Source: Scyliorhinus canicula
Lineage: Eukaryota
Length of the DNA: 64,000 nt
Direction of reading: 5' to 3'
Assembly (NCBI RefSeq): GCF_902713615.1
Contig: NC_052159.1
Span: 70,656,520 to 70,720,519, forward strand
The notes beneath the pieces are model-generated. The model did no database searches and had not been told where the DNA came from. It saw nothing but the letters and a program-made list of their open reading frames with translations. Below, in pieces: positions 6,501-51,345 of the stretch (its first letter is position 1; each line of letters starts with the position of its first letter). The position numbers and the translations under genes are program-made.

Positions 6501-6719
6501 CTCAACGTGGTCATCACCATGAGACTCACCGAATACTTCCCTGGGGCCATTGTCAGTGGTGCCATTGCCAGCACCTCCAACCCTGACCCCTACAAGATCC
6601 CGCCTCCATCTTTACCCACAGAGCCTGCCCCGCTCCTTGCTCCAACCCCACACCTTCTCTGCATTTGCCGTCCAATCATAATACAGCAAGATTGTGAGGC
6701 CTCGGCTCCCCTACTGACG

Positions 6720-11300: not shown

Positions 11301-11710
11301 AGTGGGTGAATGTGGTGAATGTATTGAGTAACAATTCACCATCTGAAATGAAAATGAAAATGAAAATCGCTTATTGTCACGAGTAGGCTTCAAGGAAGTT
11401 ACTGTGAAAAGCCCCTAGTCGCCACATTCCGGCGCCTGTCCGGGGAGGCTGATACGGAATACGGTGATACCTGATATGGTGCTTATCTGTATTACGCTGT
11501 TGCCCATGTGGGCTCCACCTATGGACCATTGCATGGTATTACTTATAATGTGGCATGCTGGGGCCTGTGTGAGCTCTGCCCTTGACTCCACCCCTTGAGG
11601 GGACGTAGAAAGAGCAGTCCCACTAACAGTCGGAGGCAGGCACTGTTCTAGTTGATTAAAGCCACAGTTTACTTCTACTCCTGGTTTCGTGTGAATTGAT
11701 AGTCGCATCA
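8322..11710 (+). mobile_element. Gypsy/Ty3 LTR retrotransposon, internally deleted
   Basis: 5' LTR remnant 8322-~8447 matches the 3' LTR 11311-11710; TSD AATAA; gag knuckle CSDCGRKGCFAKVC, protease LLLGLDF, RT, RNase H (ESDAS...) and integrase zinc-finger region (CHPG...CPICTEC); integrase core deleted near 10795; a SINE fragment sits inside the 3' LTR (~11346-11460). Confidence 0.95.
8612..10075 (+). pseudogene. Gypsy protease/reverse transcriptase reading frame (disrupted pol)
   Basis: SPWRAQVV, RMVVDYSQTIN, AYPLPRI, TAF, PFG and YLDN motifs; frameshift at the 3' end, RNase H continues at 10189-10485. Confidence 0.9.
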
Positions 11711-12454
11711 AATAATAAACAGAACGTAATATGCACCAAATAAAAATAGAAAATATGCATCAAGCCGATGTCTGTGAAGTCAAAAATGGGCAGTTAGTTA
11801 CAGAGCCACCTTCATCAGAAATGAAATCAGTGACAAAGGGTCTACACCCAAAACTTTGAGGCACATCATTAACTTCTCACACAGAGTATGTCTGGAATTG
11901 TGGTCTTATTGCCATTGTGGACACCAACAGATTTTGGATTCCACAATGCAATGTAGATTGGGTGGTTTCTAGAACATGCAGCTGATCCACGACACTTATT
12001 AAATGACTGATTGATAATCTATCCTATTGAGCCACATTTTCTTTTAAAAGTATTAACAGACCCATCTTATACTTTCAGCAATTCCAGACTTTATTCCACT
12101 TCTCTTCATTAGTACTTTTTTCTCTTTGTCTCGAAAATGTACTCTGCCCTTCAACATTAAATACAATTATTGTTCGCAACATTTTCATATTATTGTAAGA
12201 GTAGCATGCGTTTATTTCGAAGGTTGGAACTCGAATCAAGATGCCTGTGTATTTTATTTATTATAATTCTATCTCAATATTTGATGAAAGGGTAATCTAG
12301 ATGTACCAGCTGGAGTGTTAGCGAACTGGTGACTGAAAGTGTGCAAGCCAAAAATCCTGGCACTTACTGCCGAAGGTCACGTTCCCTAGTGACCACAACC
12401 CTACTGGAATATGCTGGGTCGGGGTAAAGTGACCAAATTTGCATTCCCTCCAAG

Positions 12455-24599: not shown

Positions 24600-26634
24600 A
24601 ATACTGTGCAATACTGCACAGAACGTATGCACTATTTATTTGAACTTATACATTGGTTTTTCATTATCCTCGAAAGACTTATCTACTCTTTTACTTGTAT
24701 TTTAGAAAGACCTATCTACTCTTTTACTTGTATTAAATTGAAATTTGTTACTCAGTAGAAGTCAGACTGGTGAATTTTAAAGTCTGGTGATGTGGTTCAA
24801 CACTGTTCCAGTTCTGTTAACTTCATTAATTGCTTCGGATACAATTCTTCACAGATATGCAACCTTCCAAGTTTGATCAGAAATGTTAAGTTTGCACTGT
24901 CGCTGCCACATTTTTTCTTTGAACTCATCCATTATATATTTTGAATGATACAAGTTTTTTTAAACTGATACAAGTTTTTTTAAACCAATAAAAGCTATTG
25001 TATAAAAACATACACCCTTGCCCATGACTCACACTTACAGTACAAGGTAAACATGGAAGACTATAGCCAGAGGCAAACTCTGCACCTGGTGAAAGCCGAC
25101 TGGAGCAGTGTGAAATTTTACAGGCAATCTGCTCTTTGACCTTGCTAAATTTCAGTTGGTTATTCTGCTGTAGGGAAAAGACAATCATTATGCTTTGAGG
25201 ATTTAATGACCTTTATGCTAATCGTTCAGACCGAGATGTGGACCTTTTATAATTATTTTTTGTGAAGTAGACAAAGTATTTTTATTTAAGAGTAACATGA
25301 ATAGTTCAAATACACAAAATGTTTGCTCATTAGTCTCATTCAAAAATAATTACCAAAACCACAAAAACACATTTTCATCAGTGCAGCATAAAGGTTTATG
25401 TGATCGTGGTCTCTTATTAGTAAAACTTTCAAAATATTAGTGATTGTGGTCTCTTATTAATAAAACGTTCAATAATTAGTTTCTGTTGCTATGCTGGTCA
25501 ACTGCTTTTTTTCTTCATTCCAAATTGAAGCAAAACTCTCATCTAATCAGAAAATTTCAATATAACAAATATTTTCCATTCAGTCTCATTTTGTGGAACT
25601 TTTAGTCCGGACACTACCTTAACCATTTAATCTTGATACACAAGTCCATTCAACTGCTTCAATTATAATGGCACTCAATGCATTGAATGCAGTCAATCTA
25701 TTGCCCCATTCACAGATCTCAGTTTAATGCATGTTAGAAAGGCTAATGTTTCATTCATAAATGTTTTCTTATAATAGATAATTTTGCTTTTTTGGCAAAC
25801 ATGGGCAGCTTTGACCATCTTACATTCAGAGTTTTTGCAGAATGAGGGAATAAATCAAATTATTCTAAATTGGCAGGTTATAAAATCGGATCTAAATCTA
25901 TGGACAACTTAAATGTGCTTTAGCCAGGGCTCCATAGGACTGGATTGGTGGTTACAAAGTGAGCTGGAGCTGTGAAACAGTAAGTACATATTTTGTTTTT
26001 ACTGTCCATTTAACTAAAAGCATTGGAAATCTGCATTCCTCTGAAGTAGGAATTCAGGTGGAATTTTGAAACAATTTGTAACATAATAAACAAAACCCTT
26101 CAATGCACCTTGTAATGTGGTAAATCACAACTGTTCTTTATAAGCAGTTTTATTGTAGCTATACATAGATACATACAAGATAGGAGCAGGTGGAGGCCTG
26201 CAATATTACACGAGTATATGTAAGAGATCTGGTCACCCTGACACACAGCAGGCTCAAATATTGTAGTATTTATTAAATTTTAATAAAGTTAACCTATGAC
26301 TAGTCATTATGAAGTAAAAATCAAAAATCTGTTGCCTCAGTACTGTAACATATAGTCGTGCCCCCCTCCCCCCCCCACTCCACCCAGAGAAAACTTCAAA
26401 ATTGACCATATTAGTGAAGAACTGCAGATTACATGTCTCTGGCACGCTACACCTGGAGCCACTACTACATCGTGCTTTAAATTCCATTCAGCAGTTCATA
26501 ATATGTATTGTTCCAACACAGAGCTAAAAGGTCACTATTATACATAAGAAAAATTAAGCCGATGTTCTTGGTTGCCTTACAGTTCTTCTAGTTCAACTAC
26601 TCCAATAAATGAACATGTACAACAAGCCAAAGGG

Positions 26635-26766
26635 NNNNNNNNNNNNNNNNNNNNNNNNNNNNNNNNNNNNNNNNNNNNNNNNNNNNNNNNNNNNNNNNNN
26701 NNNNNNNNNNNNNNNNNNNNNNNNNNNNNNNNNNNNNNNNNNNNNNNNNNNNNNNNNNNNNNNNNN
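26635..26766. other. Assembly gap (132 N)
   Basis: Run of N. Confidence 1.
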
Positions 26767-28066
26767 ACTGTGATAATGGCACAGGCACATTTTATTAATG
26801 CAGGCTAGCTTCCTGCCAGAATCATAGGATTCTCAACTATGTGGTGTCTGCTTGTTTCCTGTTCCCACTCGTGATATTAATAATTATGCAGTGGGATAAT
26901 TAGCAACACAAAGAGTCATTCCTACCAGCTTGCAGCTAGATTTTTGTTTTGCATGTTAACCTTCTGTGAGCAGAAATGACAAGCTCAGTGAAATAACAGG
27001 TTGAACTTCCAGTGTCCAAAAAGGTTAACTATCCATGGCATCTCTTGCCTTAAGTAGACAAATCAGATATATAGAGATGTTATAATTCTATAGGTAAAAC
27101 CTAACAACTTGATTTATTAATTTAGATTTCAATCATAAAATGTCAACAATACATTCACGTCCAGTTGATTTCTAATTGTTCAGAAGTCTTTTTAAAGGAT
27201 TGACAGAAACTGGCAATTAATTATCTAGATTATTTTGGCATTACATTTCAAGTATAGCCCACGATAAAGGAAAATATAGATCGATAATATTTATGCCCAC
27301 CTCAAGTTGATTTCAAATTATTCACAAGGATTTTTAGGTAGGACAGAAACTATCAATCAATTATCTAGATAATGTTTTAAGTACATTTCAAATATAATCC
27401 ACAATAAAGGTAAAAAAATACATAAAAGTTGCAAGCAAATAATGAGATCATATGCTTGTACACTAACTTCTTCACAAAAAGATATACAACCTATAAAAGG
27501 AGCAGAGGTTCTTAATATGCTTGCTTCTTTTCTATCCCTATTCATAGTTTCAACTTCTTAAAGTAACAGCAGAAAATAAAGGAGGCAGCTCTTTCATTTT
27601 ATTGGGAATTTGAGCACTATGCTCTGGCGCTGCATCTCAATAATTGTCACCATTTCCCCAAACACTAAAAGGAGCACCGTGCATTTATCTTCAAGGGAAT
27701 GAACCAGACTGGTTTCATATCTATCTTTTTTTTAAAGAGAAATACATTTCAAACTTCATGCACATTCCATTAAAATGCTTGCAATTTCAAGGATACTTAT
27801 TAAATTCTTGAGACGGGTAGTATGAGAAAGAAAACATTCTGAAGGCATGCAGAAAAAGACTAAACTTGAAACCTGCTATTTTTTTTAAATAACCTAACTG
27901 CAAGAATCTTTCTTCACCCTCAATGTCTCTTTTCACTGCAGTGGCTTTGGCTGCACAGCTCACTGTGTGAAATACCTTTTATCTGCAAATTATTAATACA
28001 ATCACACTGAAAAAAACCCAGAAATTCGCTTAAGTGTTATACAATATTGAAAACAGTTGCACTGAC

Positions 28067-28246
28067 CGGCAGGACGTACTCTAACCCATTCCTTTTAGCC
28101 ACGTCTCTGGCTACGTCCTCTCCCTCCTCTATCTCAATGGTGTAGTAGTTGAGAGGATCAGCAGTCTCCTCCCCTCTAGTGGTTACCAACGCACTTTGCA
28201 AGAAGCAGAGGGAATAAAACAAGACGGCGGGTTTTCCAAAGGCCAT
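28067..28246 (-). CDS. First coding exon of a proprotein convertase (subtilisin/kexin, S8B)-like gene: signal peptide and start of the prodomain
   Basis: MAFGKPAVLFYSLCFLQSALVTTRGEETADPLNYYTIEIEEGEDVARDVAKRNGLEYVLP (60 aa); acceptor ttcccatttttcag about 10 nt before the ATG; phase-0 donor CCG|GTCAGT; the NxY/WxxEIxxGxxxAxxxAxxxG pattern and the exon length and phase match the first coding exon of PCSK1/furin. Confidence 0.8.
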
Positions 28247-28990
28247 GAATCTAAATCTGAAAAATGGGAAGAGAATTAGAGAACACATCACGAGTCATAC
28301 ATGAAAATCTTGCCTGAACTGACATTGGTGACAGGAACTTAATCAACACTACACTGTACCGCACTGCATTTAGATGTCATGGATTAACATTAACAACTTG
28401 CCTCAACCTGTCTGTGGCAAAATATTGTTTGTTAAAGGTTGCATCGACAATAATCAGGTTTTAGCTGGTGGAATATTTTGGAAACCAACGAATCACAAAG
28501 TAGATATATTGAGCGTACAACTCCACGATATCAAATTCTATTTTATCAAGCTATGAGTTTAAAGGGTTGGGAAATGAACTCAGGATGAAAGTCTTGGTTT
28601 GAAGCAAAGATATGCTTGATGCTACTTTCAAAAAGATATTTATTCATATTTTATTACCAGAGAGCCCCGAAAATAAATGGGGCAGTGGAATATCATCTCT
28701 GCGGGATAAAGGGTAATTTCTTGTCTATTTTAACCAATTATGTGCTCCTTCTATAACTCCAGATAATTGTATGTTAACGTGCTGCTTCCTTTTTTATTAG
28801 AATTTACCATTTTCCCAACAAGACTTACAACTGATTGGAACAAATGCTATTCTTTTTAAACAAACTGATAATTTATTAAAAGTTAACTGATTCCCAAATA
28901 GTCTGCAATTAGAAAATGTGCATCTCATTCCCAAGACTCTGGTTCCATGCATTTTCTTCCTTCACAGAACAGATGCAAAGATTTAAATAC

Positions 28991-29051
28991 CTTGCATTGT
29001 ACAAACATGGACAGTCACAGAACTTCTTGCCGAACAGGAGCTATTTATATA
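28991..29051 (-). promoter_or_regulatory. Candidate TATA box and short non-coding first exon of the convertase-like gene
   Basis: TATATAAAT at 29051-29043 (minus); AAG|GTATTT donor at 28991; the coding exon has an acceptor upstream of its ATG, so an upstream exon is expected. Confidence 0.4.
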
Positions 29052-29119
29052 AAATAGGGTTCACTGTCATTGTAAAATTGTAATTAACGTCCAATTCTGG
29101 TTTAAGAAGAGTTACATTT

Positions 29120-29440
29120 GAATTAGGAGCATAGGCCACTCGGCCCCTCGAGCCTGCTCCATCATTCAATAAAATCATGGCTGATCTGACTGTGAACTGA
29201 ACTGCTTGCACTTGCTAAACTTTCACCCCCTTGTCAATCAAGAAACTATCTTGCTCTGCCTAGAAAGCATTCAAAAACAGCTTTCGCTGTTTTGAGGAAG
29301 AGTTCCAGAGACTCACCATCCTCTGAGAAAACACGTCTTGATTGGTTGACCCTTCGATTTACCTGTGACTCCTAGTTCCAGATTCTCCCGCAAGAGGAAA
29401 CATCCTCTACACATGCACCCTGTCAAGTTGCCTCATGATT
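29120..29440 (-). mobile_element. Old CR1 3'-end fragment
   Basis: Reverse complement of the CR1 3' UTR (TCAGCCATGAT...GAGCAGGCTCGAGGGGCCGA...GCTCCTAATTC) and of the end of ORF2. Confidence 0.8.
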
Positions 29441-29849
29441 AGTTGACTTCATTTTAAAGTCCCACCATTGGCTCAGCAATTTATCCAGTGAGTGGACAAG
29501 CTATACAGATAAGGGGAGACCGGGGTTCAATCCCTTGATCTGTGTTGAGGAGCATGAGAGACGTTCCAATTAGCCTTAATGCCTCAGAGTTTGGTTGGGG
29601 AAATTGCCTATGGTTTTTGATTGTCATCCAGTGATGGATGACAGAGTTAGATATTAGGAGACAGAATTTGGCAATGTTACTTCTATATTCCCTCTGTGGC
29701 TTCAGTAAAGAGCCATGGAAAGCAGGGATAGCTGTGATGAAATCTAGGCTGAATAACCAAATGAAATGCCAATGTTTGGCATGTGGTTTAATTGTCGATT
29801 GAAGGAAATACAAGAGAGCAATTGTTATTTTTATGAAAATTTGTTTAAG

Positions 29850-30925
29850 GGATATGGGCATCGCTTGTTAGGTCAGCATTTATTGCCCATCCCTAGTTGC
29901 TGACTAGTTGAATGACTTGAAGGGGGACCTCCAGGTGTTCCTGGGTGTCTGCTGCTCTTGTCCTTCTAGATGTTAGTGGTTGTGAGTTTGGAAGGATTTG
30001 TCTAAGGAACCTTGGTGAGTTGCTGCAGTGCATCTTGTAAATGTTGCATATAGCTGTCAGTGTTCGTCGACGGTGGAGGGTCTGAATGTTTGTGGAAGGA
30101 GGAGCAATCAAGCGGGCTGCTTTGTCCTGGATGGTGTGGAGCTTCTTGAGTGTTGTGAGGGCTGCACTCATCCAGACAAGTGGAGAGTATCCAATTACAC
30201 ACCCGGGGCGGCATTCTCCCCTACCCGGCGTGACGGAGGGTCCCGGAGTAGGGGAGTGGCACCAACCACTCAGGGGTCGCGCCTCCCCAAAGGTGGGGAA
30301 TTCTCCCCACCTTTGGGGGCCAGCCCCGCGCCGGAGCGGTTGCCACCAGAAGACCGGCGCAAACAACCGGCGCCCCCGGCAGCAGGGCTGGCCGAAAGGC
30401 TTTCGCCGGTCCGCGCATGCGCCGGCAGTGACGTCAGCGGCAGCTGGCCACTGACGTCACTGTCGGCGCATGCGCAATGTGGGGTTCTCTTCCGCCTCCG
30501 CCATGGTGGAGGCCGCGGCGGACGCGGAAGAAAATAGAGCAGCCAGGGCACTGGCCCGGACTCTGAGGGGGGGGCCCCGATCGCGGGTCAGGCCGCCGTG
30601 GGGGCACCCCCTGGGGTTCGATCGCCCCCCGCCCCTCCAGGACCCCGGGGGCCTGCTCGCGCCGCTGAGCCCGCCGTTCCAGAGGTGGTTTAAACCTCGC
30701 CGGCGGGAGAGGCCTCCCAGCGGTGGGACTTCGGCCCATCCGGGCCGGAGAATCGCCGCAGGGGCCTCTCTGATCGGAGTGGCGAGATTCCTGCCCCCGC
30801 CACTTCCCGGGTGGCGGAGAATCTCTGCCACGGCGGGGGCGGGATTTTAGGCGCCCCCAGGCGATTCTCCGACCCTGCTGAGGGTCGGAGAATTTCGCCC
30901 CCGACTTGTGCCTTGTAGATGGAAT
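29850..30925 (-). mobile_element. CR1/L2-group LINE 3' fragment interrupted by a MITE
   Basis: YSPLVWMSAALTTLKKLHTIQDKAARLI...LHRRR...YKMHCSNSPRFLRQ; the sequence resumes at 30904 after the MITE. Confidence 0.8.
30206..30900. mobile_element. CpG-rich MITE (second subfamily)
   Basis: TIRs GGGCGGCATTCTCC / GGAGAATTTCGCCC; perfect TSD CCG (30203-30205, 30901-30903). Confidence 0.9.
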
Positions 30926-31268
30926 TGCCTTCCAGAAGCAGTTGACTTCTTCAAGGTGGTTGAGTGAATAGGGAGAAAGTCAAAAAGATCCTGGTCGCAA
31001 AACTTAGCTCTGTGGTGCCCATATTGTCACCACAAACCTGTGCTGTTGCCAAGAACAAAATGACACCAGCATCTCACACACATACACACTTATGGTGTGG
31101 ATTGCGGCAACCGCCATTTTCGGTAGGCCGGTAGCATGGGCGATTGGAACCTGCTATGGAAGCTTGTCGAGTGGCCATACCTTATGTCATACTGGTTAAA
31201 TTGTAACAGTGACATTTTCAGTGACACAACAAGCATCTTATCCTCACAAAGTTGACCTGTTCAGCAGC

Positions 31269-31770
31269 ACAGATGCACCATAGAAAGCACCCCATCTGGT
31301 TGCATCACAGCCTGATATGGCAACTGCTCGGCCCAAGACCGCAAGAAACTTCAGAGAGTCGTGAACACAGCCCAGTCCATCACTCAAACCCGCCTCCCAT
31401 CCATTGACTCCAGCTACACCTCCCGCTGCCTGGGGAAAGCGGGCAGCATAATCAAAGACCCCTCCCACCCCCTTACTCACTCTTCCAACTTCTTCCATCG
31501 GGCAGGAGATACATAAAGTCTGCGAACACGAAGGAACAGATTCAAAAACAGCTTCTTCCCTGCTGTTACCAGACTCCTAAATGACCCTCTTATGGACTGT
31601 CCTGAGTAATACTACACCCCGATATGCTTCACCCGATGCCGGTGTCTATGTGTATCATTGTGAACTTATGTTGATATTTTCTTTTGATTTTCTTTTCTTT
31701 TCATTCACTTAATGATCTGTTTGCAGAAAAATATTTTTCACTGAACGTCGATACACGTGATAATAAACCA
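31269..31770 (+). mobile_element. Rex1/Babar LINE 3' end
   Basis: RCTIES...GCITA(W)YGNCSAQDRKKLQRVVNTAQSI...IIKDPSHP...SGRR...RFKNSFFP, followed by a 3' UTR with AATAAA. Confidence 0.88.
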
Positions 31771-31974
31771 ATCCAAAGCAAGAAGGAACCCCCACCAATG
31801 CTATTTAATGGGATTATCAATGTTAGTTGCTGATTTATTTCTATTGGCAGCTGCTGAGTTAGTGGAATTGATTGGTATTTTCCACTATTGTATAATGTTG
31901 GTAAAATGTAAAGGCAATGATGTGGCACTTGTGAAGATCTTGGCTCTCACTTCAAGAGTTCAGGTCAGACTGAA

Positions 31975-32905
31975 TATAGGTGGTCTGATTACCAAGTTTG
32001 CAGATGATACTAAGATTGGTGGAGTTGCAGATGGCGAGGAGGACTGTCAGAGAATACAACAAAATATAGATAGATTGGAGAGTTGGGCAGAGAAATGGCA
32101 GATGGAGTTCAATCCAGAGGTGATGCATTTTGGAAGATCAAATTCAAGAGCGGACTATATGGTCAATGGAAGGGTCTTGGGGAAAATTGATGTACAGAGA
32201 GATCTGGGAGTTCAGGTCCATTGTCCCCTGAAGGTGGCAACGCAGATAGAGTGGTCAAGAAGGCATACAGCATGCTTGCCTTCATCGGAAGGGGTATTGA
32301 GTACAAGAGTTGGCAGGCCATGTTACAGTTGTATAGGACTTTGGTTCGGCCACATTTGGAATACTGCATGCAGTTCTGGTCACCACCTTACCAGAAGGAT
32401 GTAGATGCTTTGGAGAGGGTGCAGAGGAGGTTCACCAGGATGTTGCCTGGTATGGAGGGTGCTAGCTATGAAGAAAGGTTGAGTAGATTAGGATTGTTTT
32501 CGTTGGAAAGACGGAGGTTGAGGGGGGACCTGATTGAGGTCTACAAAATTATGAGAGGTATGGACAGGGTGAATAGCAACAAGCTTTTCCCAAGAGTGGG
32601 GGTGTCAGTTACAAGGGGTCACAATTTCAAGGTGAGAGGGGGAAAGTTTAAGGGAGATGTGCGTGGAAAGATTTTTACGCAGAGGGTGGTGGGTGGCTGG
32701 AATGCTTTACCAGTGGAGGTGGTAGAGGCAGGCACGATAGCATCATTTAAGATGCATCTGGACAGGTATATGAATGGGTGGGAACAGAGGGAAGTAGACC
32801 TTGGAAAATAGGAGACAGGTTTAGATAAAGGATCTGGATCGGCGCAGGCTGGGAGGGCCGAATGGCCTGTTCCTGTGCTGTAATTTTCTTTGTTCTTTGT
32901 TCTTT
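31975..32905 (+). mobile_element. CR1 LINE, 5'-truncated
   Basis: KFADDTKIGG...WQMEFN...LVRPHLEYC...FTQRVV; (TTCTTTG)n tail; same subfamily as 38009-41380. Confidence 0.95.
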
Positions 32906-33855
32906 ATTTGTTCAGACCCTCAGTCATGGGTGCTGTGGTTTCCATTTCCCTTGGTCTACAGCATGATAGGGAAATCTCACAGAAGAGATCAAACTGATTG
33001 AAATAGGAGGAGAGGAGAAGGGAGAGAAAGGATATCAACAAGCGGCCCTGCCCAGCAGGGTCTTCAGGGAGCATTTCTCATACTTTAACTTAAGTCAGAA
33101 ATAATCACCGGAATTCACCAGTCGGTGCGATTCAGTTTTCCCACTGGCACCCCTGCCTTCATGTTTCCAGGCAGTCTGAGGTGACTTGAATGGGAAATCC
33201 CATAGGCAAGCAGTGGGAAGATAGAATCTCACTTCTGGTAAACGGTGCTCGTCCGAGAAACACGTGGCTGTGGGCCTGGGGAATCGCTCCCAGTGTGTTT
33301 ATATAAAGGAGGTGACTGATGCACGGTTTGCAAAGAGGGGTAATGTATTGCCTTTAGAGAAACAGGGTGTGTGCACATGGCTTCCATGGTGCAGTGTGCC
33401 ATTGACTGCACACATGTTGCTTTGTGGATGGCAAATCTAAATTCAGAGATGCACCGTAACTGCAAAGTGTTCAATTTCCTGAATGTCAGGTTGAATTGTG
33501 ACCAAGCTCAGTACATTATCCAGATCAATGTCCAATGATCCTGAGGAGATTTGATATGGGAGATATTCCTGAGGGTGACCCTATCTGTGAAAGTGTCTTG
33601 AACCAGGGGACCCATTTTAAGAATGTTTAAAACTGTTTAAAACGAGGATGAGGAGAAATAATTCTGCCTTTATTCTGTGTCAGTCCAGTGTCTCATCAAC
33701 ATCTGAACCACTACAAAAATCCCAGAGGATGACTATTGGATAACAACAGTTATATGCTGACACCTCGGCTCATGATTTCAGTGCTCGATCACACACAAGT
33801 CTCTAGCCTCCCTGTATCTAATGTCAGGCTGGCAAATGGAAGATTGGTGTGCTCA

Positions 33856-34238
33856 AGAAGGTTAAGAGGTGACTTAATAGAGGCATACAAAATGATCAGA
33901 GGGTTAGATAGGATGGACAGTGAGAGCCTTCTCCCATGGATGGAGGTGGCTAGCACAAGGGGACATAGCCTTAAATTGAGGGGTAATAGATATAGGACAG
34001 ACGTCAGAGGTAGGTTTTTTACGCAAAGAGTGGTGAGGCCGTGGAATGCCCTACCTGCAACAGTAGTGAACTCGCCAACATTGAGGGCATTTAAAAGTTT
34101 ATTGGATAAGCATATGGATGATAATGGCATAGTATAGGTTAGATGGCCTTTAGTTCTTGACTTCCCATGTCAGTGCAACATCGTGGGCCGAAGGGCCTGT
34201 ACTGCGCTGTATCGTTCTATGTTCTATGTTCTATGTTC
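33856..34238 (+). mobile_element. CR1 LINE 3' end
   Basis: RRLRGDLIEAYKM...TRGHSLKL...FFTQRVV; (TTCTATG)n tail. Confidence 0.92.
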
Positions 34239-34547
34239 TGCAGTTTGGACCATTCTGGAAGAGTCCTATATACTCTCCAAACTTTTGAGTCCTGATTCAT
34301 AATGGTTTTACATCCTGACAACCTCATCATTATGAAGGCATAACCCCTGTCACCAGTTATACAACGAGCAGCAGAAAAGGAAGAGGAGAAAGGGAGGAGG
34401 AAATCCTTTTCTTGTATGGCTGTCTGTAATTGACTAATCTGATGTTGGTACTAGTGAACGCAAACTTAATTCCCCATTCAACAATAATCCCACATTTTAC
34501 CACCCCTATGTTATAAACCACTGCTGTGTCCTCTTGATCTCGGAGAT

Positions 34548-35625
34548 TCACTCAACTCATTCCAGGAATGAGGGGCTTATCTTATGAAGAAATGTTAAAC
34601 AGGTTGGGCCTGTACCCATTGGAATTTCAAAGAATGAAAGATGATCTTATTGAAACATGTATATGGGCGCGATTCTCCGCAAATGCGGAGAGTCGTGAAG
34701 GCTGCCGTGAAACAGGCCGTGTTTCACGGCAGCCTCCACGCCCCCTCCCGGGACCCAATTCTGCTCCCCGGTTGGGGCTAGCAGCGGGACCCCGTGAACC
34801 TCGGCATCGCAGGCTTAGCGAACTTCGCTAAGCCCGCGCGCCAAGGTTAACGGCGGCTGATGCAAACGATGTCATCAGCCGCGCATGAGCGGATGATGTC
34901 ATCACGCATAAGCGTGAAACCCGCGCATGCGCGGGCCGTTATGCCCCTCAGCCGCCCCGCGGCCGTGCCAATCGGTGGCATGGTTCTCCAGAATGGCACT
35001 TTGCGGCCGTTTTCACGAACTGTGAGAGCAGGTGTGTTGGAGTTCGTGAAAACGGCCGTAAAGGCCTGGGAAATCGGCCCATCGGCTAGGGGAGAATCGC
35101 TGCTCGCCGTAGAAAACGGCGAGCAGCAATTCGTGTCGTGGGGCGGCCGTGGGGGGGGGGGGGGGGGGGGAGAATAGCGGGAGGTCGGGAAAAATGTCGG
35201 GAAGGCCCTCCCGCTATTCTCCGACCCGTCATGGGGGGCGGAGAATCGCGCCCACAAAGATCCAGCGAGGATTTGATAAGATGTATACTGACAGAATGTT
35301 TCCATTTGTGGGAAAGATAACAAACAGGGGACACAGTTTAAGAATAAGAGCTCTACCATTTACTACGGAGATGACGTGAACTTTTTTCTTTCAAAAGTAT
35401 TGTTGGTATGTGGAATTTTCTTCCACAGAAGATAATGGAGTCAAGATCATTGAATAAAATCAAGGTAGACCATGACAGCTTTTCTATAGACAAGGGAGTC
35501 AAGGGTTATGGGGGCTGATGACAAAGTGGAGTTGAGACACAACCAGTGAGCTATGATCATAATAAATTGAGCAAACTCGAGGGGCTTAATGGCCTGGCTG
35601 CTCATAATTTTAATGTTTATATGTT
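34548..35625 (+). mobile_element. Old CR1 3' end interrupted by a MITE
   Basis: MRGLSYEEMLNRLGLYPLEFQRMKDDLIET before the MITE; ...RGFDKMYTDRMFPFVG...RGHSLRIR after it. Confidence 0.85.
34665..35253. mobile_element. CpG-rich MITE (first subfamily; internally deleted relative of 52676-53377 in the opposite orientation)
   Basis: Perfect TIRs GGGCGCGATTCTCC / GGAGAATCGCGCCC; no clean TSD. Confidence 0.88.
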
Positions 35626-38008
35626 GCAATGCTCATATTAAAGGCACCACAAAGCAAACACTCAATTTCAAAGTTTTGAAACAAATTCAAATTTCATACA
35701 AAATAACCTAATTATCGTTACAAAATTAATCTTCCTTATGCATTTCCTTTGTGTCTTGTCCTCCATTTGCCTGTTTCACAGCTGCAGAAAGGCTGCTGAT
35801 ATTCAGTGGGGGAGACTGCGAAGGCCATGCAGGATGTCCCCTCTCCAACTCTGGCTCGGGGAGACTTGACTTTGGACTGCTATATCTCAGCATGGGCAGC
35901 TGCAGTCTGGGTTAGCTGTCTGACAGGCAGCAACACGAACATTTCTGGGGCAGCAGTGGTAGAAGGATCAGTGCGGTCATCTTGAGAGAGGACAACAGGT
36001 TCATGCTGCATGAGCCATTGTCACTGCCTCGGAACAGTTCACAGCAATCTTAGTAATCTGCCAAAGGACAATTTGTTGCGGGGCTGTGAGAGCCTGGAAA
36101 CTCCTTTAGGCACTCTATCTGCAGCATGAGAGTAGCAGTCTAAACCTGCATGGAATTAAACTGAGCTTACATGACTTTTGTCTGAATTTCCACTCATTCA
36201 GACCTGTGTGACCTTTGGTGTGCTGCCATGGAAGCTGAGGCACTGGCCCTCTAATGTTGCACCGTAGCTGGCTCTGCTTTTACACTGGAAGGGGTGGACT
36301 CCAAACTTTGTACAAAGTCATGCCCTTCATGTTCCATGACAGTAACTGAACACTCTGGGAGCTTGGTGAATGACCGAACCAATAGTCCATCTTCTTAACC
36401 AATGAAATTGAAAGCAACAGAGTTAATGCTGGAGAAGGAAATAGGGTGAAAAGGGAAAAAAGAAACAGAAAGGAAAGGGAAAAAAAGGAAAATTGGAACA
36501 TGTTAAAAATATCTAAGAACAATTTACTACCTGCAGTAGTATGACTCTGCAATTCTAATTGTTTCCTTTTGGGTCGCTAAGATTGAGTGACATTCAAGTA
36601 GCATGCATCTCGTCATTAAAAGTATCCTTGCACCACAAAATATCAGTCCTAACTTTCTGCAGTGAATTTAATTGACTTTTACAGCAGTAATGCAATGATT
36701 TCTTGATGCGTATAGGAAGATTGACAGTAAGTTCTGGTTTTCACAAGGCTAACAGTGGAGCATGCAAATTATTCAGCAGTTTGTGGTGATTTGCATCTTA
36801 TGATCTACCTCTTTCTTGTCACTGATTGCTGAATTATTTGCACACTAATGCAAAATTGCCCCTTTAACTCACTGTTATTTTGTCAACAAGTTCTGGCCCT
36901 TAAAGGTCTATTAGCATGTACCACAGCTTTCACTTTTCCAGAGAAAAGACCCTGTTCAGTCATTCCTCTAGTTCCTGATAATCACTTAGCTCGAGTAACC
37001 TTTTTATGCTCTTATAAATACCTTGGAAGGAAAATATATAATTGCATCTTTGTGCAAACCAGTAAAGTTCATATTTTTCTTTTTCAAAATGCTAATTTGA
37101 TTTGGAGCTGGATTAATTTCAAACTGAGCGCCTGCATGGGGTTTGTATAAATGAGACCATCAACACTAATTGGACTCTGGTATTTAGCAAATAGTAATTT
37201 TAAAACTGACCATTATAATTGAACAATGAACAGTATCGGTAAAGGTTCATGATGGAAATCCTCAATCTGAATGTACAATATTCATATGAACTGTGAAAGG
37301 ACAGATAGTAAAATGAAAAGACTAAATCTCATGTCATACATAAGTCAGGACTAGAAATACTAAAAATGTATTTTATTCGGTTAGAAAATTTGGAAGAACA
37401 CATTCCTTGAGAATGTTTAATTTATATTGTAAGTACTGTCCTGTCACAAGTTGCACCTGTCCAATGATTCTCCTGGGCTTCAAGGGCCAAATAAGCACTC
37501 ACAACACACCCATAACAGTAAAATTGTCTGTTTCGGCATTTTTATTTCTTACAGATTGGCGAGTAACAGTATAAATGCCAAGCTAATGAGGGAGATCAAT
37601 CTGCTAATACTCTGGTTGCAATTTTAGAAATAGGTAAACTGTACATTGAGGTGGGAGGAATGCTGCCTGGAAATGTATCATGTTTGACACATCGTTTGGC
37701 TCCGTTCTGAGGGATTTGCAGTGGAATGTATTATATGCTTTGGTGCCAACAACAGAAGTTGATCGACTGCAAAATGCATTAAATCTGCACTGTTTACTGA
37801 CCAGAAGGAAAACTGAGAGCAGAGACATGACCTGTTCCTCAGATTTCTAGAGGCTGTAGAGCTGGTTCTCGAGTAGTGTGTTCAGCTCCCATATCAGAGA
37901 CTTGAGCGCAAAATCCAGGTGAAGTACATGAGGATGTACAATGTCAAAGGTGTATCCTTTTATTTTTAATAATAATAATTTCTTATTGTCACAAGTAGGC
38001 TTCAATGA

Positions 38009-41000
38009 GTAGAAGTAGAAATTCAAGAATAGTCAGAATGAATACGTGGCTTGAGAGATGGTGCAGGAGGGAGCGGTTCAGATTTTTGGGACATTGGAAC
38101 CGGTTCTGGGGGCGGTGGGACCATTACAAATTTAGGAGTCTGGTAACAGCAGGGAAGAAGCTGTTTTTGAATCTGTTCCTTCGTGTTCGCAGACTTTATG
38201 TATCTCCTGCCCGATGGAAGAAGTTGGAAGAGTGAGTAAACGGGTGGGAGGGGTCTTTGATTATGCTGCCCGCTTTCCCCAGGCAGTGGGAGGTGTAGCT
38301 GGAGTCAATGGATGGGAGGCAGGTTCATGTGGTAGACTGGACTGTGTTCACGACTCTCTGAAGTTTCTTGCAGTCTTGGGCCGAGCAGTTGCCATATCAG
38401 GCTGTGATGCAGCCAGATGGGATGCTTTCTATGGTGCATCTGTGCTGCTGAACAGGTCAACTGTGTGAGGATAAGATGCTTGTTGTGTCACTGAAAATGT
38501 CACTGTTACAATCTAACCAGTATGACATAAGGTATGGCCTACACCTGGGCAGGACTGGAACCAATGTCCTAGGGGGTGCTTTTGCTCACACTGTTGGGGA
38601 GGTTTTAAACTAATGTGGCAGGGGGATGGGAACCAGATAAGGAAGTTAGAGGTCAGTAAAGAGGCAGCAACTATAGCCAGTAAGGTACTAGATAATAAAC
38701 TCAATATGACTAAGGGGAAGAGTAGACAGGGAAGAGATGATGAACGCAATGGGACAGGTGGTTTGAGGTGCATTTGTTTTAATGTGAGAAGTGTAGCAGG
38801 TAAGGCAGATGAATTTAGGGCTTGGATTAGTACCTGGGAATATGATGCTATTGGTATTACTGAGACGTGGTTGAGGGAAGGGCAAGACTGGCAACTAAAT
38901 ATCCCAGGGTATAGATGGTTCAGGAGGGATAGAGAGGGAGATAAAAGGGGTAGAGGAGTTGCATTACTGGTCAGAGATGATATCACAGCTGTGATTAAGG
39001 AGGGCACGATGGAGGATTCGAGCACTGAGGCAATATGGGTGGAGCTAAGAAATAGGAAGGGTGCAGTAATATTGTTGGGACTTTACTACAGGCCTCCCAA
39101 AAGCGAGGGTGAAGTAGAGGTACAAATATGTAGACAGATTATAGAAAAATGTAGGAGCAAAAGGGTGGTTGTGATGGGAGATTTTAACTTCCCCAACATT
39201 GAATGGGTCAAGTATAACAAAATTCGGCAGGAGCTAGGGAATGTGGATTGGGAGCAGTTGTTTAAGGGTAAATCCACATTGGAAATGTGGGAGTCTTTTA
39301 AGGAAAGGTTGATTAGAGTGCAGGACAGACATGTCCCTGTGAAAATGAGGGATAGAAATGGCAAGATTAGGGAACCATGAATGACGGGTGGAATTGTGAG
39401 ACTAGCTAAGATGAAAAAGGAAGCATACATAAGATCGAGGCGACTTAAACTGATGCAGCTTTGGAGGAATATCGGGAAAGTAGGACAAATCTCAAACGCG
39501 CAATAAAGAGAGCTGAAAGGGGTCATGGAATATCTTTGGCTAATAGGGTTAAAGAAAATCCCAAAGCCTTTTATTCGTATATAAGGAGCAAGAGGGTAAC
39601 TAGAGAAAGGATTGGCCCACTCAAAGACAAAAGAGGGAATTTATGCGTGGAGTCAGAGGAAATGGGTGAGATTCTTAATGAGTACTTTGCATCGGTATTC
39701 ACCAAGGAGAGGGACATGACAGATGTTGAGGCTAGGGATGGATGTTTAAATACTCTAGGTCAAGTCGGCATAAGGAAGAGAGAAGTTTTGGGTATTCTAA
39801 AGGGCATTAAGGTGGACAAGCCCCAAGAATGAATGGGATCTATCCCAGGTTACTGAGGGAAGCAAGGGACAAAATAGCTGGGGCCTTAACAGATATCTTT
39901 GCAGCATCCTTGAGCACGGGTGAGGTCCCGGAGGACTGGAGAATTGCTAATGTTGTCCCTTTGTTTAAGAAGGGTAGCAGGGATAATCCAGGGAATTATA
40001 GACCTGTGAGCTTGACGTCAGTGGTAGGCAAACTGGTGGAGAAGATACTGAGGGATAGGATCTATTCACATTTGGAAGAAAATAGACTTATCAGTGATAG
40101 GCAGCATGGTTTTGTGCAGGGAAGGTCATGTCTCACAAACCTAATAGAATTCTTTGAGGAAGTGACAAAGTTAATTGATGAGGGAAGGGCTGTAGATGTC
40201 ATATACATGGACTTCAGTAAGGTGTTTGATAAATTTTCCCATGGCAGGTTGAAAAAGTGAAGTCGTATGGGGTTCAGGGTGTACTAGCTAGATGGATAAA
40301 GAACTGGCTGGGCAACAGGAGACAGACAGTAGTGGTGGAAGGAAGTGTCTCAAAATGGAGTAAGGTCACTAGTGGTGTTCCACAGGGATCCGTGCTCGGA
40401 CCACTGATGTTTGTGATATATATAAATGATCTGGACAAAGGTATCTGTGGTCTGATTAGCAAGTTTGCAGATGATACTAAGATTGGTGTAGTTGCAGATA
40501 GAAAGGAGGACTGTCAGAGAATACAGCAAAATATAGATAGATTGGAGAGTTGGGCAGAGAAATGGCAGATGGAGTTCAATCCAGGCAAATGCGAGGTGAT
40601 GGATTTTGGAAGATCTAATTCAAGAGCAGACTATATGGTCAATGGAAGAGTCCTGGGGGAAATTGATGTACAGAGAGATCTGGGAGTTCAGGTCCATTGT
40701 ACCCTGAAGGTGGCAACGCAGGTCAAGAAAGCATACAGCATGCTTGCCTTCATCGGAAGGGGTATTGAGTACATGAGTCGGCAGGTTATGTTACAGTTGT
40801 ATAGGACTTTGGTTAGGCCACATTTGGAACACTGCATGCAGTTCTGGTCGCCACATTACCAGAAGGATGTGTATGCTTTAGAGAGGGTGCAAAGGAGGTT
40901 CACCAGAGGTGGTTGCCTGGTATGGAGGGTGCTAGCTATGAAAAAAAGTTGAGTAGATTATGATTGTTTTCATTGGAAAGACGGAGGTTGAAGGGGGACC

Positions 41001-41380
41001 TGATTGAGGTCTACACAATTATGAGAGGTATGGACAGGGTGAATAGCAATAAGCTTTTTCCAAGAATGGAGGTGTCAATTACAAGGGGTCACGATTTCAA
41101 GGTGAGAGGGGGAAAGTTTAAGGGAGATGTGCGTGGAAAGATTTTTACGCAGAGGGTGGTGGGTGCCTGGAATGCGTTGCCAGTGGAGGTGGTAGAGGCG
41201 GGCACGATAGCATCATTTAAGATACATCTGGACAGATATATGAACGGGAGGGGAACAGAGGGAAGTAGATCCTTGGAAAATAGGCGACAGGTTTAGATAT
41301 AGGATCTGGATCGGCGCAGGCTGGGAGGGCCGAAGGGCCTGTCCCTGTGCTGTAATTTTCTTTGTTCTTTGTTCTTCTTT
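38009..41380 (+). mobile_element. CR1 LINE with the end of ORF1 (esterase-like) and a disrupted ORF2, inserted into a SINE
   Basis: NTWLERWCRRERFRFLGHW...GLHL; ORF2 motifs ITETW, YRPP, GDFN, GVPQGSVLGP, FADD; deletion after GDFNFPNIEW; ATGA direct repeat at 38005-38008 and 41381-41384, with the host SINE continuing across it. Confidence 0.95.
38130..38539 (-). repeat. Inverted duplicate of 31172-31582 inserted in CR1 ORF1
   Basis: Reverse-complement match over ~410 bp, including the Rex1 5' junction and ~95 bp of non-Rex flank. Confidence 0.93.
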
Positions 41381-41668
41381 ATGAAGTCACTGTGAAAAGC
41401 CCCTAGTCGCCATATTCCTGCACCTGTTTGGGGAGGCTTGTCCAAGAATTGGACCCATGCTGCTGGCATTGTTCTGCATTACAAGCCAGCTGTTTAGCTC
41501 TCTGTGCAAAACCAGCCCCTAATAATTGCTTATTGTCACAAGTAGACTTCAATGAAGTTACTATGAAAACCTCCTAGTCGCTACATTCCAGCACATGTTC
41601 GGGGAGGCCAGTATGGGAATTAAACCCGTGCTGCCAGCTGTTTAGCCTACTGTGCTAAACAAGCCCCT
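41381..41668 (-). mobile_element. Two tandem short tRNA-derived SINEs (first copy split by the CR1)
   Basis: Repeated TTATTGTCACAAGTAG...GAAAAGCCCCTAGTCGCCA...AAACCAGCCCCT units. Confidence 0.85.
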
Positions 41669-42646
41669 GGTTTATCCTCTCACCTGAACATTAAAGATCT
41701 TATGGCATTAGAATGAAAACAAGAAAGAAAGTTCTCTCCAGTGCCCTGGTCAACATTAATCTCCAACAAACTTCATTCCATGATATTATTTGGCTGTTAT
41801 CACATTGTGCTTGTGCGATTTTGCCATGTATAGGTTGGCTGCTGTATTTTCTACATTACAACAGTGACTGAACTTCAAAAGTACTTCACTGAATAGACTT
41901 ACATTTTTATTTTTCTAGCTCCTTCCATGTCCTTAGGCTGTCCCAAAGCTCTTTACAACTAATTTTAAGGTTATTTTAGACATCTCAAAATCGTAAATGG
42001 CATGTTATAAATGTAGAGCCTTCTTTCCTTTTGGAGCATTACCATCTAAATGGCACAAAAGGTTGCTACTCTAGGGCACCAGAGTGGTGTCCCTTTTCCT
42101 TCCATCACACAAAAGAGAAATACTGCAGATGCTAGAAATCTGAAATAAAAACTGAAAATGTTGGAAATGCAGTATTGTTAGGGGAGAGAAGCAGGATTAA
42201 CAGCTTGGATTTTTCTGTCAGTGGTGAAGTAACACTTGTTGATGACCTTAAAAAAAGCTGCCCATAAAATTGCACGATCTTTATGCCACAGATTTCCACT
42301 TGTTTTTATGTCAAGTGGCCTCCAGGCATGGAGCAGCATTGATATCAGCAGAAAGGATGAACAACCAATCGCATTGAAGTATTCTCACTGACAGCAAACC
42401 AGGAAGTTAAAGGTACTGAATCATTTAATTTGAACTTAAAATTTAAGATGTAAAAATGAGTGATTATGATTAAGTTAGAAATTAAATGAAGATAAACATT
42501 GAAAAAATATCAATTTTATCATAATATCAAAATGCGACATCCTACAAATATTAAATCAGCTTTTCAGGACAGTGAGGGAATTCATCAATAATCATGAACT
42601 TAGTATGGTGTTAAAAACCCAGGTGTGCCTCTTTTAGCAAGTAACA

Positions 42647-42821
42647 GGGACTGTTTAGCACACTGGGCTAAATCGCTGGCTTTGCAAGGAGACCAAGGCA
42701 GGCCAGCAGCACGGTTTGATTCCCATACCAGCCTCCCCGAACAGGCACCGGAATGTGGCGACTAGGGGCTTTTCACAGTAACTTCATTGAAGCCTACTCG
42801 TGACAATAAGTGATTTTCATT
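42647..42821 (+). mobile_element. Short tRNA-derived SINE
   Basis: GGGACTGTTTAGCACACTGGGCTAAATCG...GGTTTGATTCCC...GGAATGTGGCGACTAGGGG; TAACA direct repeat on both sides. Confidence 0.88.
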
Positions 42822-43526
42822 TAACAAAGATTTTTACAGCAAAGCAAACAGAAAATAGTGGAAGTTTTCATTACCAGAGATTTCCCATTGATTGCTCTCT
42901 GGGGAAGACGTTAACAGTGCATGCTCAGGAGATGCATAAAATCACTGACAACATTTTGATTTCTGTTGACAGTTTGGCTATCATTACCACTGTAAAATGA
43001 GGATGATATCGTTCAGGCCAATTTGATCAAACAGTCCCTTTGCCAGAACCGGCAATCGGGCATCGAATTGAAAGGTTAACTTTGTTTCTCTCTTCACAAA
43101 TACTAACTGCCCTATTTCTGCATATTCCCAGAATTTTCCTTTCATATGTCACTTTTATTTCTCTCAGTTTCAAATTCAATAAACCCACAAAACATACATG
43201 GCGATGAAAGTAGCAAAAACTGACCAGAAATTCAAAACAGCTGAAACAGCTCCAGAAGCAAATGGCTCAAGAACAGCTCTGATTATAAACCTCTTGACAT
43301 GTGAAAATTAATGATTTCATGGGCTTTTTTTCACTAAAGCTGCAGCGACATCAACCTCTTTCATTGACATTACCAAGGGGTATTGCATTTCTTGAGACTA
43401 GGGACATGCATCTAGGGATATCTTAGAATTATTAATTTTAGAAATTTTAGCTTCGGGTTAATCTTGCTCACTTTTAGCCATTTATAATTGAGATAATTTC
43501 AATCATAAAAAAAGTGACATTTGGAT

Positions 43527-43757
43527 GTTCTTTTTCTTAAAATTTAGAATACCCAATTAATTGTTTTGCAATTACGGGACAATTTTGCATGGCCAATCCA
43601 CCTAGCCTGCACATCTTTGGATTGTGGGGGCGAAACCCACACAAACACGGGGAGAATGTGCAAACTCCACACGGACAGTGTCCCAGAGCCGGGTTCAAAC
43701 ACGGGACCCCAGCGCCGTGAGGCACCATGGCAAACCCACTGCACCACCATGCTGCCC
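43527..43757 (-). mobile_element. HE1-like short SINE
   Basis: GGGCAGCATGGTGG head on minus; 12-bp TSD TGACATTTGGAT (43515-43526, 43758-43769). Confidence 0.9.
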
Positions 43758-44815
43758 TGACATTTGGATTTTCAACTAATAATTCCCGTAATATCACATG
43801 GTGAACTCAGTAAGAGGTCAATGGATCTCCTAGAGAAATTATAAAATTGCTAAACAGAAGAAAAGTAGGAGAAACTTCAGAGATTGCTCACAACATTTTA
43901 CCTTCCTCTAGAACTCCCAAATGATTGTGCAGTAGTGTGCACTTTAAGGGGCAAGTTCTCGGAGGATCATGAGACACATTCGGCAAATTGGGCAGGAGCA
44001 AATTCTGCGGCTGAGCACGGGTTTCCTTGCAGTTGGGAGTCTGGAGTCGTAGAGTATGATATTGCACTCTCTGTAGATAGTTGATTACCTTAATAAACCA
44101 TTTATTTGTGATCTGCTTGGTGGTTACCGGTCTTACAGGATACTACATATGGTGATGAGGATCAATCAGAGTGCCATCCTACTACTACAGTAATTGGCAA
44201 AGCAGACTTGTGTGGAAGCCAATTTTGAAGAAAACTCATTCAGCAGTCAAAATGCCCCATTTTGGGAAACTTAAATCTTTCAACCCTAACACAGAGCAAT
44301 GGATGCTATATATATGCCTGTAGAATTTTTTTTTGTGGCCAGTGAAATTGGGGGGGAAGAGAAGCAGTGGGTAATCCTATTAACAGCCTCCAGGACTCCA
44401 ACCTTTAACCTGATAAGGAGTCTGTCTTCTCCAAATGCCCCTAACTCAAAAGCTTTCGAGGAGCTTGTGAAATTAGTCAAACGACATTAACACCTGAAGC
44501 CCTTGGTGATAATGCAATGATACAAATTTAATTCAATGACAAAACTCCAGGGGAGATGATAGGAGTATTTGTGGCACATCTAAAACAAATTGCTGAGCAG
44601 TGCAAGTTCAGGTCTGCACTCAATGACACGTTGAGAGACAGGGAAGTGTGTGGCATTAATAACACAGCCTTACAAAATAAACTATTAGCAAATGCAGAGA
44701 TTACCTTAAAGAGGACATTAAAGATCGCCTAGGCTGTGACAAGTGCCAAAAGGGGGACAATGGAACTACAGAGCATGCAAGCAGGTGAGGTCCACAAAGT
44801 TTGATGGGAAGCTGC

Positions 44816-51300: not shown

Positions 51301-51345
51301 AACCTTTACATCCACATGAGCAAGGCAGATGAGGCCTGATTTAGT

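Follow-up and report, generated by a model that had tools for sequence, protein, structure and literature searches.

A catshark exon that very probably opens the coding sequence of an expressed kexin/furin-type convertase gene lying apart from PCSK1 to PCSK7

Results

The stretch of DNA analysed here, which we call the window, comprises 64,000 nucleotides of the Scyliorhinus canicula genome (contig NC_052159.1, here C14; C14:70656520-70720519), and it contains a short exon of a proprotein convertase gene, set between the repeat-rich ends of two very long introns. Very probably, the coding sequence of an intact, expressed gene starts in this exon, and the product is a soluble convertase of the kexin/furin type, belonging to a lineage apart from PCSK1, PCSK2, furin, PCSK4, PCSK5, PCSK6 and PCSK7. 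When the reverse complement of window positions 28067-28246 is translated, it gives 60 codons, from an ATG to a proline, that are free of stops, whereas the plus-strand frame across the same positions is interrupted by a stop. The 60-codon reading proposed in a first-pass annotation, made from the letters alone, is therefore real, and its strand, which that annotation left unstated, is the minus strand. The peptide begins with M-A-F-G-K, continues with a hydrophobic stretch and T-T-R-G-E-E-T-A-D-P-L, and ends with N-Y-Y-T-I-E-I-E-E-G-E-D-V-A-R-D-V-A-K-R-N-G-L-E-Y-V-L-P. Its description as the start of a pro-domain behind a putative signal peptide also held up for the pro-domain and for the phase-0 splice donor after codon 60, the donor (gtcagt) being read directly 3′ of the last codon (Table 1).

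Judged by alignment, the resemblance of this peptide to convertases is far above chance. All 60 residues are identical to residues 36-95 of the orthologue from Scyliorhinus torazame, and 55 of the 60 match the N-terminus of a 793-aa convertase from the basking shark, Cetorhinus maximus (XP_078401724.1; E 7e-38). The Pfam S8_pro-domain profile (PF16470) scores the exon peptide alone below threshold (E 0.067, 14.3 bits; residues 36-58 against profile positions 3-26) and the full basking-shark orthologue at 45 bits, against a cut-off of 25.5. A homologue search with the 60-aa peptide, restricted to proteins of 33-105 aa, gave no match. The signal peptide is a candidate by inspection and hydropathy scan: the most hydrophobic 19-residue window of the orthologues is their N-terminus, and residues 5-22 form a low-confidence helix in an AlphaFold model. 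An intron interrupts the pro-domain after approximately profile position 28, a position that the first-pass annotation had described as shared with PCSK1 and furin. Of the six other convertase loci in the genome, five have it at the same place; the sixth, the PC7-like locus on C19, differs in that its pro-domain is contained within one exon.

The exon is transcribed and spliced. Words sampled from window positions 27900-28400 were present in 14 small RNA-like runs (7 studies) at a fraction of 0.29-0.48, mostly 0.35, about what the 190-nt exon alone would give. When RNA contigs were compared over window positions 26900-29600, two of them, one from run X13 (4260 nt, depth 125) and one from run X5 (699 nt), were found to cover only positions 28065-28258 (the 2 extra bases at each end being ambiguous with the neighbouring exons) and to continue at either end with sequence of other exons. 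Downstream, the overhanging sequence is identical to C14:70563039-70563068, where it immediately follows a cag acceptor and encodes V-G-N-L-K-G-F-H-I-L-K as in the orthologues. Upstream, it is identical to C14:70798951-70798980, where it is immediately followed by AG/gtag. Introns of ~114 kb upstream and 121.5 kb downstream flank the window exon. Because the contigs splice it to a 5′ exon 114 kb upstream, the window exon, which is the first coding exon in most orthologue models, is internal in the transcript.

Alternatively, translation could begin at an ATG in the upstream exon, adding 35 N-terminal residues (M-V-V-D-Q...) ahead of M-A-F-G-K, such that the hydrophobic stretch would act as an internal signal or signal-anchor and not as a signal peptide cleaved from the N-terminus. 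We consider this unlikely, though a good deal less so than the other alternatives weighed below. The upstream ATG is in frame, and the frame is open into the window exon, in both this genome and S. torazame, which speaks against the window exon being the first to be translated; moreover, 30 of 32 residues of the extension are identical to those of S. torazame, the RNA contigs contain the upstream exon, and RefSeq models the 35-residue extension as isoform X2. On the other side, the orthologue models of Cetorhinus, Rhincodon and Heptranchias start at M-A-F-G-K, and the extension lies outside the consensus of the family alignment. A strong -3 purine is absent at both candidate ATGs, so the sequence context is indecisive.

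A further RNA contig from run X1 (544 nt, window 27646-28165) is colinear with the genome from the intron through the donor into the exon and is preceded, at 27646, by the sequence of the SMART template-switch oligo. It could be a fragment of unspliced pre-mRNA, antisense RNA or a library artefact.

The rest of the gene lies far outside the window. Genome-wide Pfam searches (4.22 Gb in 646 contigs) detected pro-domain exons at six loci, none of them on C14. On the minus strand, 0.5-0.84 Mb downstream of the window exon, they located exons for Peptidase_S8 (C14:70.13-70.16 Mb) and for a P-domain (C14:69.848 Mb). With the 62-aa P-domain exon as query against 1.84 billion representative proteins, the most identical single-stretch match (77% identity) was the 793-aa basking-shark protein XP_078401724.1, which RefSeq lists as [quoted passage not shown]. 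Since this protein has both the N-terminus encoded by the window exon and the S8 exons of C14, one protein joins the window exon with the distant exons.

We built a gene model by mapping the Cetorhinus and S. torazame orthologues to the genome, with tblastn refinement and a pattern search for a microexon. It has 18 coding exons, from C14:70684775 down to 69785565, plus the 5′ exon, giving 19 exons spread over ~1.01 Mb of the minus strand, and every splice site inspected is canonical. The assembled protein is stop-free and 92-93% identical to the S. torazame orthologue; 766 aa were recovered, with an incomplete C-terminal end, and in the full product, of ~770 aa, the pro-domain is followed by a long disordered linker, then by the S8 catalytic domain and the P-domain, with a hydrophilic tail at the C-terminus. 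RefSeq already models this gene, under the uninformative name “PC3-like endoprotease variant B”. The first-pass annotation had found no further convertase exon in the 28 kb downstream and had placed the next one either in the gap or beyond position 1. The exon map accounts for the former observation, as the next exon is 121.5 kb away, 93 kb beyond position 1, and settles the latter in favour of a location beyond position 1 and not in the 132-N gap (26635-26766), which is the only gap in the window.

One exon of the model, a 38-nt microexon, stands just after the catalytic Asp motif, alone between introns of ~107 kb and ~42 kb, and was overlooked by protein-based exon searches.

The protein has the domains and catalytic residues of a convertase. 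On XP_078401724.1, Pfam places the S8_pro-domain at 36-113, Peptidase_S8 (PF00082; E 4e-52) at 202-497 and P_proprotein (PF01483; 80 bits) at 557-633. The motifs D-D-G, H-G-T, G-N-G-G and G-T-S are present in the C14 exons of this genome, and across an alignment of 28 family members, from cnidarians to sharks, D207/D208, H250, N351 and S432 do not vary, so that the Asp/His/Ser triad is intact. Among PDB sequences searched with phmmer, the best match is human furin (E 1.6e-133), and the alignment sets these residues on furin D153, H194, N295 and S368. The equivalents of furin D258, D306, E236, D264 and Y308, which we take from published furin structures to be residues of the S1 and S4 pockets, are kept in the same alignment. 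Three acidic positions in the extended cleft carry other residues (E230K, E257K and D259N, in furin numbering). With the S1/S4 residues kept and three cleft acidics replaced, the enzyme would be expected to have basic-site specificity with a different extended preference.

An AlphaFold model of residues 36-809 of the S. torazame orthologue (pTM 0.74) has confident pro-, catalytic and P-domains, a disordered linker (110-183) and a tail in the form of a low-confidence helix, and Foldseek aligns it to furin with a TMt of 0.95 and 45% identity. The strands and helices of the pro-domain (E31-39, H43-52, E55-60, E67-72, H79-91 and E95-104) follow the beta-alpha-beta-beta-alpha-beta order expected of an S8 pro-domain, and the first three elements are modelled at pLDDT 82-91; the P-domain is modelled as a beta-barrel at pLDDT 84-95. 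Dibasic sites in the pro-region are R-S-K-R and T-K-R (~76-82) and E-K-R (~110). A hydropathy scan detected no hydrophobic segment besides the putative signal peptide and the buried catalytic helix; as there is none at the C-terminus, we predict a soluble enzyme.

A linker of ~70 residues, poorly conserved and predicted to be disordered, separates the catalytic domain from the likely site of pro-domain cleavage; it is encoded by exons at C14:70394361-70342940. In furin, the corresponding interval is only ~15 residues long.

We also considered whether the product might be catalytically dead or a non-convertase “pseudo-protease”, or whether the copy in this genome might be a decaying pseudogene, either of which we regard as very improbable. 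Several active-site motifs are odd (C-C-C-W-G-P for S-A-S-W-G-P, H-C-G-A-D-G-Y for x-C-N-C-D-G-Y and F-R-G-T-S for H-T-G-T-S), a sister copy on C6 is plainly degraded, and the introns are enormous. The signature motifs C-C-W-G-P, H-C-G-A-D-G-Y and F-x-G-T-S-S-A-A-P, however, are lineage-wide, and since the odd motifs are common to the whole clade they are signatures of the lineage and not signs of decay. Neither the triad nor the oxyanion Asn varies within the family, none of the 18 coding exons is interrupted by a stop, the splice sites that were inspected are canonical, the 92-93% identity to S. torazame is accompanied by 75-79% identity to other sharks and a short terminal branch (0.05), and the 4.26-kb contig at depth 125 is spliced.

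To place the gene among its relatives, we retrieved the exon homologous to furin ~280-345 at each of the eight kexin-like loci (Table 1); no second PC5/6-type locus was found in the genome. PC1-, PC2-, furin-, PC4-, PC5/6- and PC7-like genes each have a separate locus, which speaks against orthology of the C14 gene to any single member of PCSK1-7. The PC7-like locus, taken as outgroup below, also differs from the C14 gene in its motifs. In an IQ-TREE phylogeny (LG+C20, 48 rows, 660 columns, rooted on PC7-like), the canonical rows all fall in one clade (95/94), and the C14 gene groups with S. torazame (100/100), other sharks and rays, Callorhinchus (100/97) and hagfish (97/92). Sister to this group stands a clade (100/100) composed of a second set of shark and ray proteins together with those of lungfish and ray-finned fishes. 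The resulting vertebrate family (99/94) is joined successively by Styela (99/90), amphioxus (99/93), sea cucumber (99/95) and cnidarian “PC3-like” proteins (92/87). A quick tree of 61 rows agreed with this arrangement. Approximately unbiased (AU) tests reject the union of the vertebrate family with PC2-like (p 9.5e-5), furin/PC4 (p 3e-97), PC1-like (p 3e-20) and PC5/6 (p 7e-38) sequences. The first-pass annotation had suggested a divergent convertase outside the canonical mammalian PCSK set, and the gene indeed falls outside all canonical clades in this tree. None of the three outcomes that it had named as refuting was borne out: the protein does not group inside a canonical clade, it has an S8 domain, and the gene is transcribed.

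A reading of the window exon as exon 1 of PCSK2, or else of PCSK4 or PCSK1, in the form of a canonical orthologue that evolves fast, is very improbable and already largely refuted: the P-domain exon is closer to the PC2-like locus on C1, at 42% identity, than to the other canonical loci (identity to the C6 copy is 54%) and teleost homologues have been automatically named “PCSK4-like”, “neuroendocrine convertase 1-like” and “neuroendocrine convertase 2-like”, but separate canonical-type loci exist, the C1 locus has an oxyanion Asp where the C14 gene has Asn, the closest relatives outside the fishes are proteins of amphioxus, tunicate, echinoderm and cnidarians and not vertebrate PCSK1-7, and the AU tests reject each exclusive clade. 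PCSK2 exon 1 in particular had been suggested by the G-E-D-x-A-R-x-V-A motif, the PC2-like P-domain and the lack of a pro-domain match on C14, and was ruled out by the oxyanion Asp of C1 and the AU result for PC2-like.

The lineage that holds the C14 gene is widespread in fishes. With XP_078401724.1 as query, the best 120 matches included sharks and rays at 65-83% identity; sturgeon, paddlefish, gar, bowfin, bichir, many teleosts and hagfish at 41-54%; and amphioxus, tunicate, cnidarians, a rotifer and others at 39-46%. No tetrapod was among these 120 matches, and no vertebrate protein there is canonical by tree or motifs. When a fragment from lungfish was used as query, all 86 matches were to fishes. 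By sequence comparison, the lineage has two vertebrate paralogues: type A, which includes the C14 gene, in cartilaginous fishes and hagfish, and type B in ray-finned fishes, lungfish and some sharks and rays. Type A appears, from the sequences compared, to be limited to cartilaginous fishes and hagfish, and type B proteins were found in Heptranchias, Heterodontus, Pristiophorus, Pristis, Narcine, Hypanus and skates. The exon had initially been attributed to an extra kexin-like paralogue kept in cartilaginous fish. There is such a paralogue, but the lineage is not confined to sharks, as the sister type B occurs in ray-finned fishes and lungfish, and hagfish carry type A.

The type B copy of the S. 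canicula genome, on C6, has stops inside four conserved exons, G-S-G-S in place of G-N-G-G, and H-Y-G-S-D-G-Y, and is, on these features, probably a pseudogene. The type B genes of skates, rays, Heptranchias and Heterodontus appear intact.

Table 1. Features of the convertase gene and other kexin-like loci of the genome. Coordinates without a contig name are window positions; approximate positions are marked with a tilde.
Feature	Coordinates	Strand	Basis
Exon as used in mRNA, 190 nt (10-nt leader and codons 1-60)	28067..28256	-	RNA contigs X13 and X5, splice sites
Probable ATG start codon (MAFGK)	28244..28246	-	N-termini of Cetorhinus, Rhincodon and Heptranchias orthologues
Putative signal peptide, approximate, residues 1-~24 (short basic n-region, hydrophobic core ~6-21)	28175..28246	-	Sequence inspection, hydropathy scan
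Start of S8 pro-domain, residues 31-60 (beta strand 1, helix 1, strand 2)	28067..28156	-	Pfam, AlphaFold model
Splice donor gtcagt, phase 0 after codon 60	28061..28066	-	RNA contigs depart from genome here
Splice acceptor cag, preceded by pyrimidine tract	28257..28259	-	RNA contigs depart from genome here
First 28 kb of downstream intron (repeats, 132-N gap)	1..28060	-	Exon map
Last 36 kb of upstream intron (repeat-rich)	28260..64000	-	Exon map
5′ exon upstream of window exon, 78 kb beyond window end	C14:70798948-70799043	-	RNA contigs, orthologue mapping
Next coding exon	C14:70562966-70563070	-	RNA contigs, orthologue mapping
Microexon, 38 nt (I-D-H-A-N-T-D-L-K-K-N-Y)	C14:~70202072-70202110	-	Pattern search; ag/gt sites
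P-domain exon	C14:69848265-69848462	-	PF01483, 67.7 bits
Kexin-like locus: gene under study	C14		
Kexin-like locus: degraded relative of the C14 gene (type B copy, ~1.8 Mb)	C6:76351618-78165293	-	Best matches Heptranchias and skate type B
Kexin-like locus: PC2-like	C1:212.03 Mb		Oxyanion Asp (W-A-S-G-D-G-G); remainder fits PC2
Kexin-like locus: furin-like	C24:3.66 Mb		Motifs of the human protein
Kexin-like locus: PC4-like	C18:123.05 Mb		86% identical to Xenopus protein, groups with it
Kexin-like locus: PC1-like	C8:128.75 Mb		Motifs of the human protein
Kexin-like locus: PC5/6-like	C8:93.46 Mb		80-84% identical to paddlefish PCSK6-like protein
Kexin-like locus: PC7-like	C19:93.7 Mb		Motifs of the human protein

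Discussion

Vertebrates are usually credited with seven kexin-like convertases and no more, PCSK1-7. The gene whose coding sequence very probably begins in the window is expressed and represents a vertebrate convertase lineage that has gone unrecognised and lacks a counterpart in mammals, and its interest is both evolutionary and practical.

In architecture the product is an ordinary-looking convertase, and its mechanism is probably ordinary as well. Convertases have a pro-domain that folds the catalytic domain and is removed autocatalytically at a dibasic site, and the enzyme, which depends on calcium, then cuts secretory precursors after paired or multiple basic residues. By analogy, the protein described here would enter the endoplasmic reticulum, and its pro-domain would fold the catalytic domain and be released by an autocatalytic cut at one of the candidate dibasic sites (E-K-R at ~110, or R-S-K-R/T-K-R at ~76-82), after which the mature enzyme may cleave secretory precursors after basic residues.

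Of known convertases, furin (PCSK3; structures 5JXG and 1P8J) provides the closest structural comparison. It shares with the C14 product the fold of the catalytic and P-domains, the Asp/His/Ser triad, the oxyanion Asn and the S1/S4 residues, and it also has the same pro-domain fold and the same position of the first intron. Unlike furin, the C14 product is without a Cys-rich region, transmembrane segment and cytoplasmic tail, and has a hydrophilic tail of ~130 aa instead; it also differs in its long disordered linker, in the three replaced residues of the cleft, and in the C-C-C-W-G-P, H-C-G-A-D-G-Y and F-R-G-T-S motifs, and the two are phylogenetically separate. Similarity to PCSK2 lies in the predicted solubility, the short C-terminal tail, a similar P-domain exon, the length of the gene, and a divergent pro-domain that Pfam barely detects exon by exon. 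PC2, however, carries Asp in the oxyanion hole, as the C1 locus does, whereas the C14 gene has Asn, and an exclusive clade of the two is rejected.

The name under which the gene is filed conveys little about it. “PC3-like endoprotease variant B” is an automatic RefSeq/UniProt name that originally belonged to a Hydra convertase, and it has been given to orthologues in Cetorhinus, Carcharodon, Rhincodon, Stegostoma, S. torazame, skates, rays and Callorhinchus. The Hydra protein named PC3-like does fall in the same large clade as the C14 gene (92/87). The name has been transferred by similarity, and inconsistently, teleost members being called kpc-1-like, PCSK4-like, NEC1-like, NEC2-like or bli-like. 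In our literature search, “PC3-like endoprotease variant B” was met in two papers on jellyfish venom only and in none on vertebrates, and a search on the automatic names and on cartilaginous-fish convertases found no description of this vertebrate gene.

A lineage of this kind has nevertheless been described outside the vertebrates. Tao, Cheng, Song, Weisblat and Kuo (2019; bioRxiv 10.1101/802215) inferred six kexin-like genes in the bilaterian ancestor and defined PCSKX as a new group, possibly sister to PCSK2, beside PCSK1, PCSK2, PCSK7, furin1 and furin2/PCSK5/6. They reported PCSKX in Nematostella, spiralians, sea urchin and amphioxus (with several paralogues) and stated that it was lost in vertebrates and Olfactores; their vertebrate sample consisted of lamprey (dropped), zebrafish, Xenopus, chicken and human, and zebrafish was listed with only the eight canonical kexin-like genes (bioRxiv 10.1101/802215). 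The clade of the C14 gene likewise contains cnidarians, an echinoderm and several amphioxus paralogues, and it matches none of the other five groups, so that it is most probably PCSKX. It differs from the published group in being found in sharks, rays, a chimaera, hagfish, many ray-finned fishes, lungfish and a tunicate. The cnidarian, echinoderm and amphioxus members of the clade all have an oxyanion Asn and so are not PC2.

We lean towards a history in which the clade is PCSKX and was kept in vertebrates and duplicated early, type A persisting in cartilaginous fishes and hagfish and type B in ray-finned fishes, lungfish and some sharks and rays, with type B decaying in S. canicula and both types being lost in tetrapods.

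Several points, besides the open frame of the upstream exon, weigh against placing the C14 gene in a separate, expressed PCSKX lineage. A raw oligo-dT run (X22) gave zero reads on the window exon. The names of the canonical loci, which rest partly on motifs of the human proteins, are to be read as “-like”, the canonical rows from this genome are 16-45% complete, and the tree was built without full-length named vertebrate PCSK1, PCSK2, furin or PCSK7; in the chimpanzee PCSK4 isoform and one Xenopus protein, the catalytic domain is aberrant or partial. The deepest node of the tree, which unites the family with two arthropod sequences, is weak (80/82) and the arthropods are long branches, as are the hagfish, lungfish and tunicate rows. 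Finally, the identification with PCSKX proceeds by elimination and taxon pattern, apart from the sequences of the published members themselves (e.g. HelroG82977).

Should this history be true, fishes would possess one or two processing proteases that lack a mammalian counterpart and have an altered extended cleft. Non-tetrapod vertebrates would keep a sixth ancient lineage as an expressed gene with intact catalytic residues, and the loss of that lineage would shift from the vertebrate stem to the tetrapods, as far as our searches show. Models of pro-hormone, growth-factor and viral glycoprotein processing in sharks and other fishes would have to accommodate one more convertase, whose specificity or regulation may be distinct, as the replaced cleft acidics and the long linker hint. 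A single name could serve for the hundreds of gene models in fishes that are at present labelled inconsistently (kpc-1-like, PCSK4-like, NEC1-like, NEC2-like, bli-like).

An Rfam scan of the 64 kb gave no match. A CpG-rich block at 30000-31000 was considered as a promoter island and rejected, as it is a repeat copy and the 5′ exon of the transcript is 114 kb away. The CpG-rich blocks (GC 0.62-0.67, CpG observed/expected ~0.75-0.8) belong to one repeat family, and similar families of open reading frames (ORFs) occur at 1361-3873, 34847-35359 and 52654-55579. Over a short piece of repeat at 29132-29194, the summed depth of contigs is very high in every RNA run (up to ~1900), many different loose ends occur, and position 29162 shows a T>C difference; the segment resembles a dispersed repeat present in numerous transcripts and not a feature of the convertase gene. 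Long plus-strand ORFs at 8612-10075, 16934-19554 and 38613-41296 are reverse-transcriptase/endonuclease-like by eye, as in retrotransposon copies lying in the introns around the exon.

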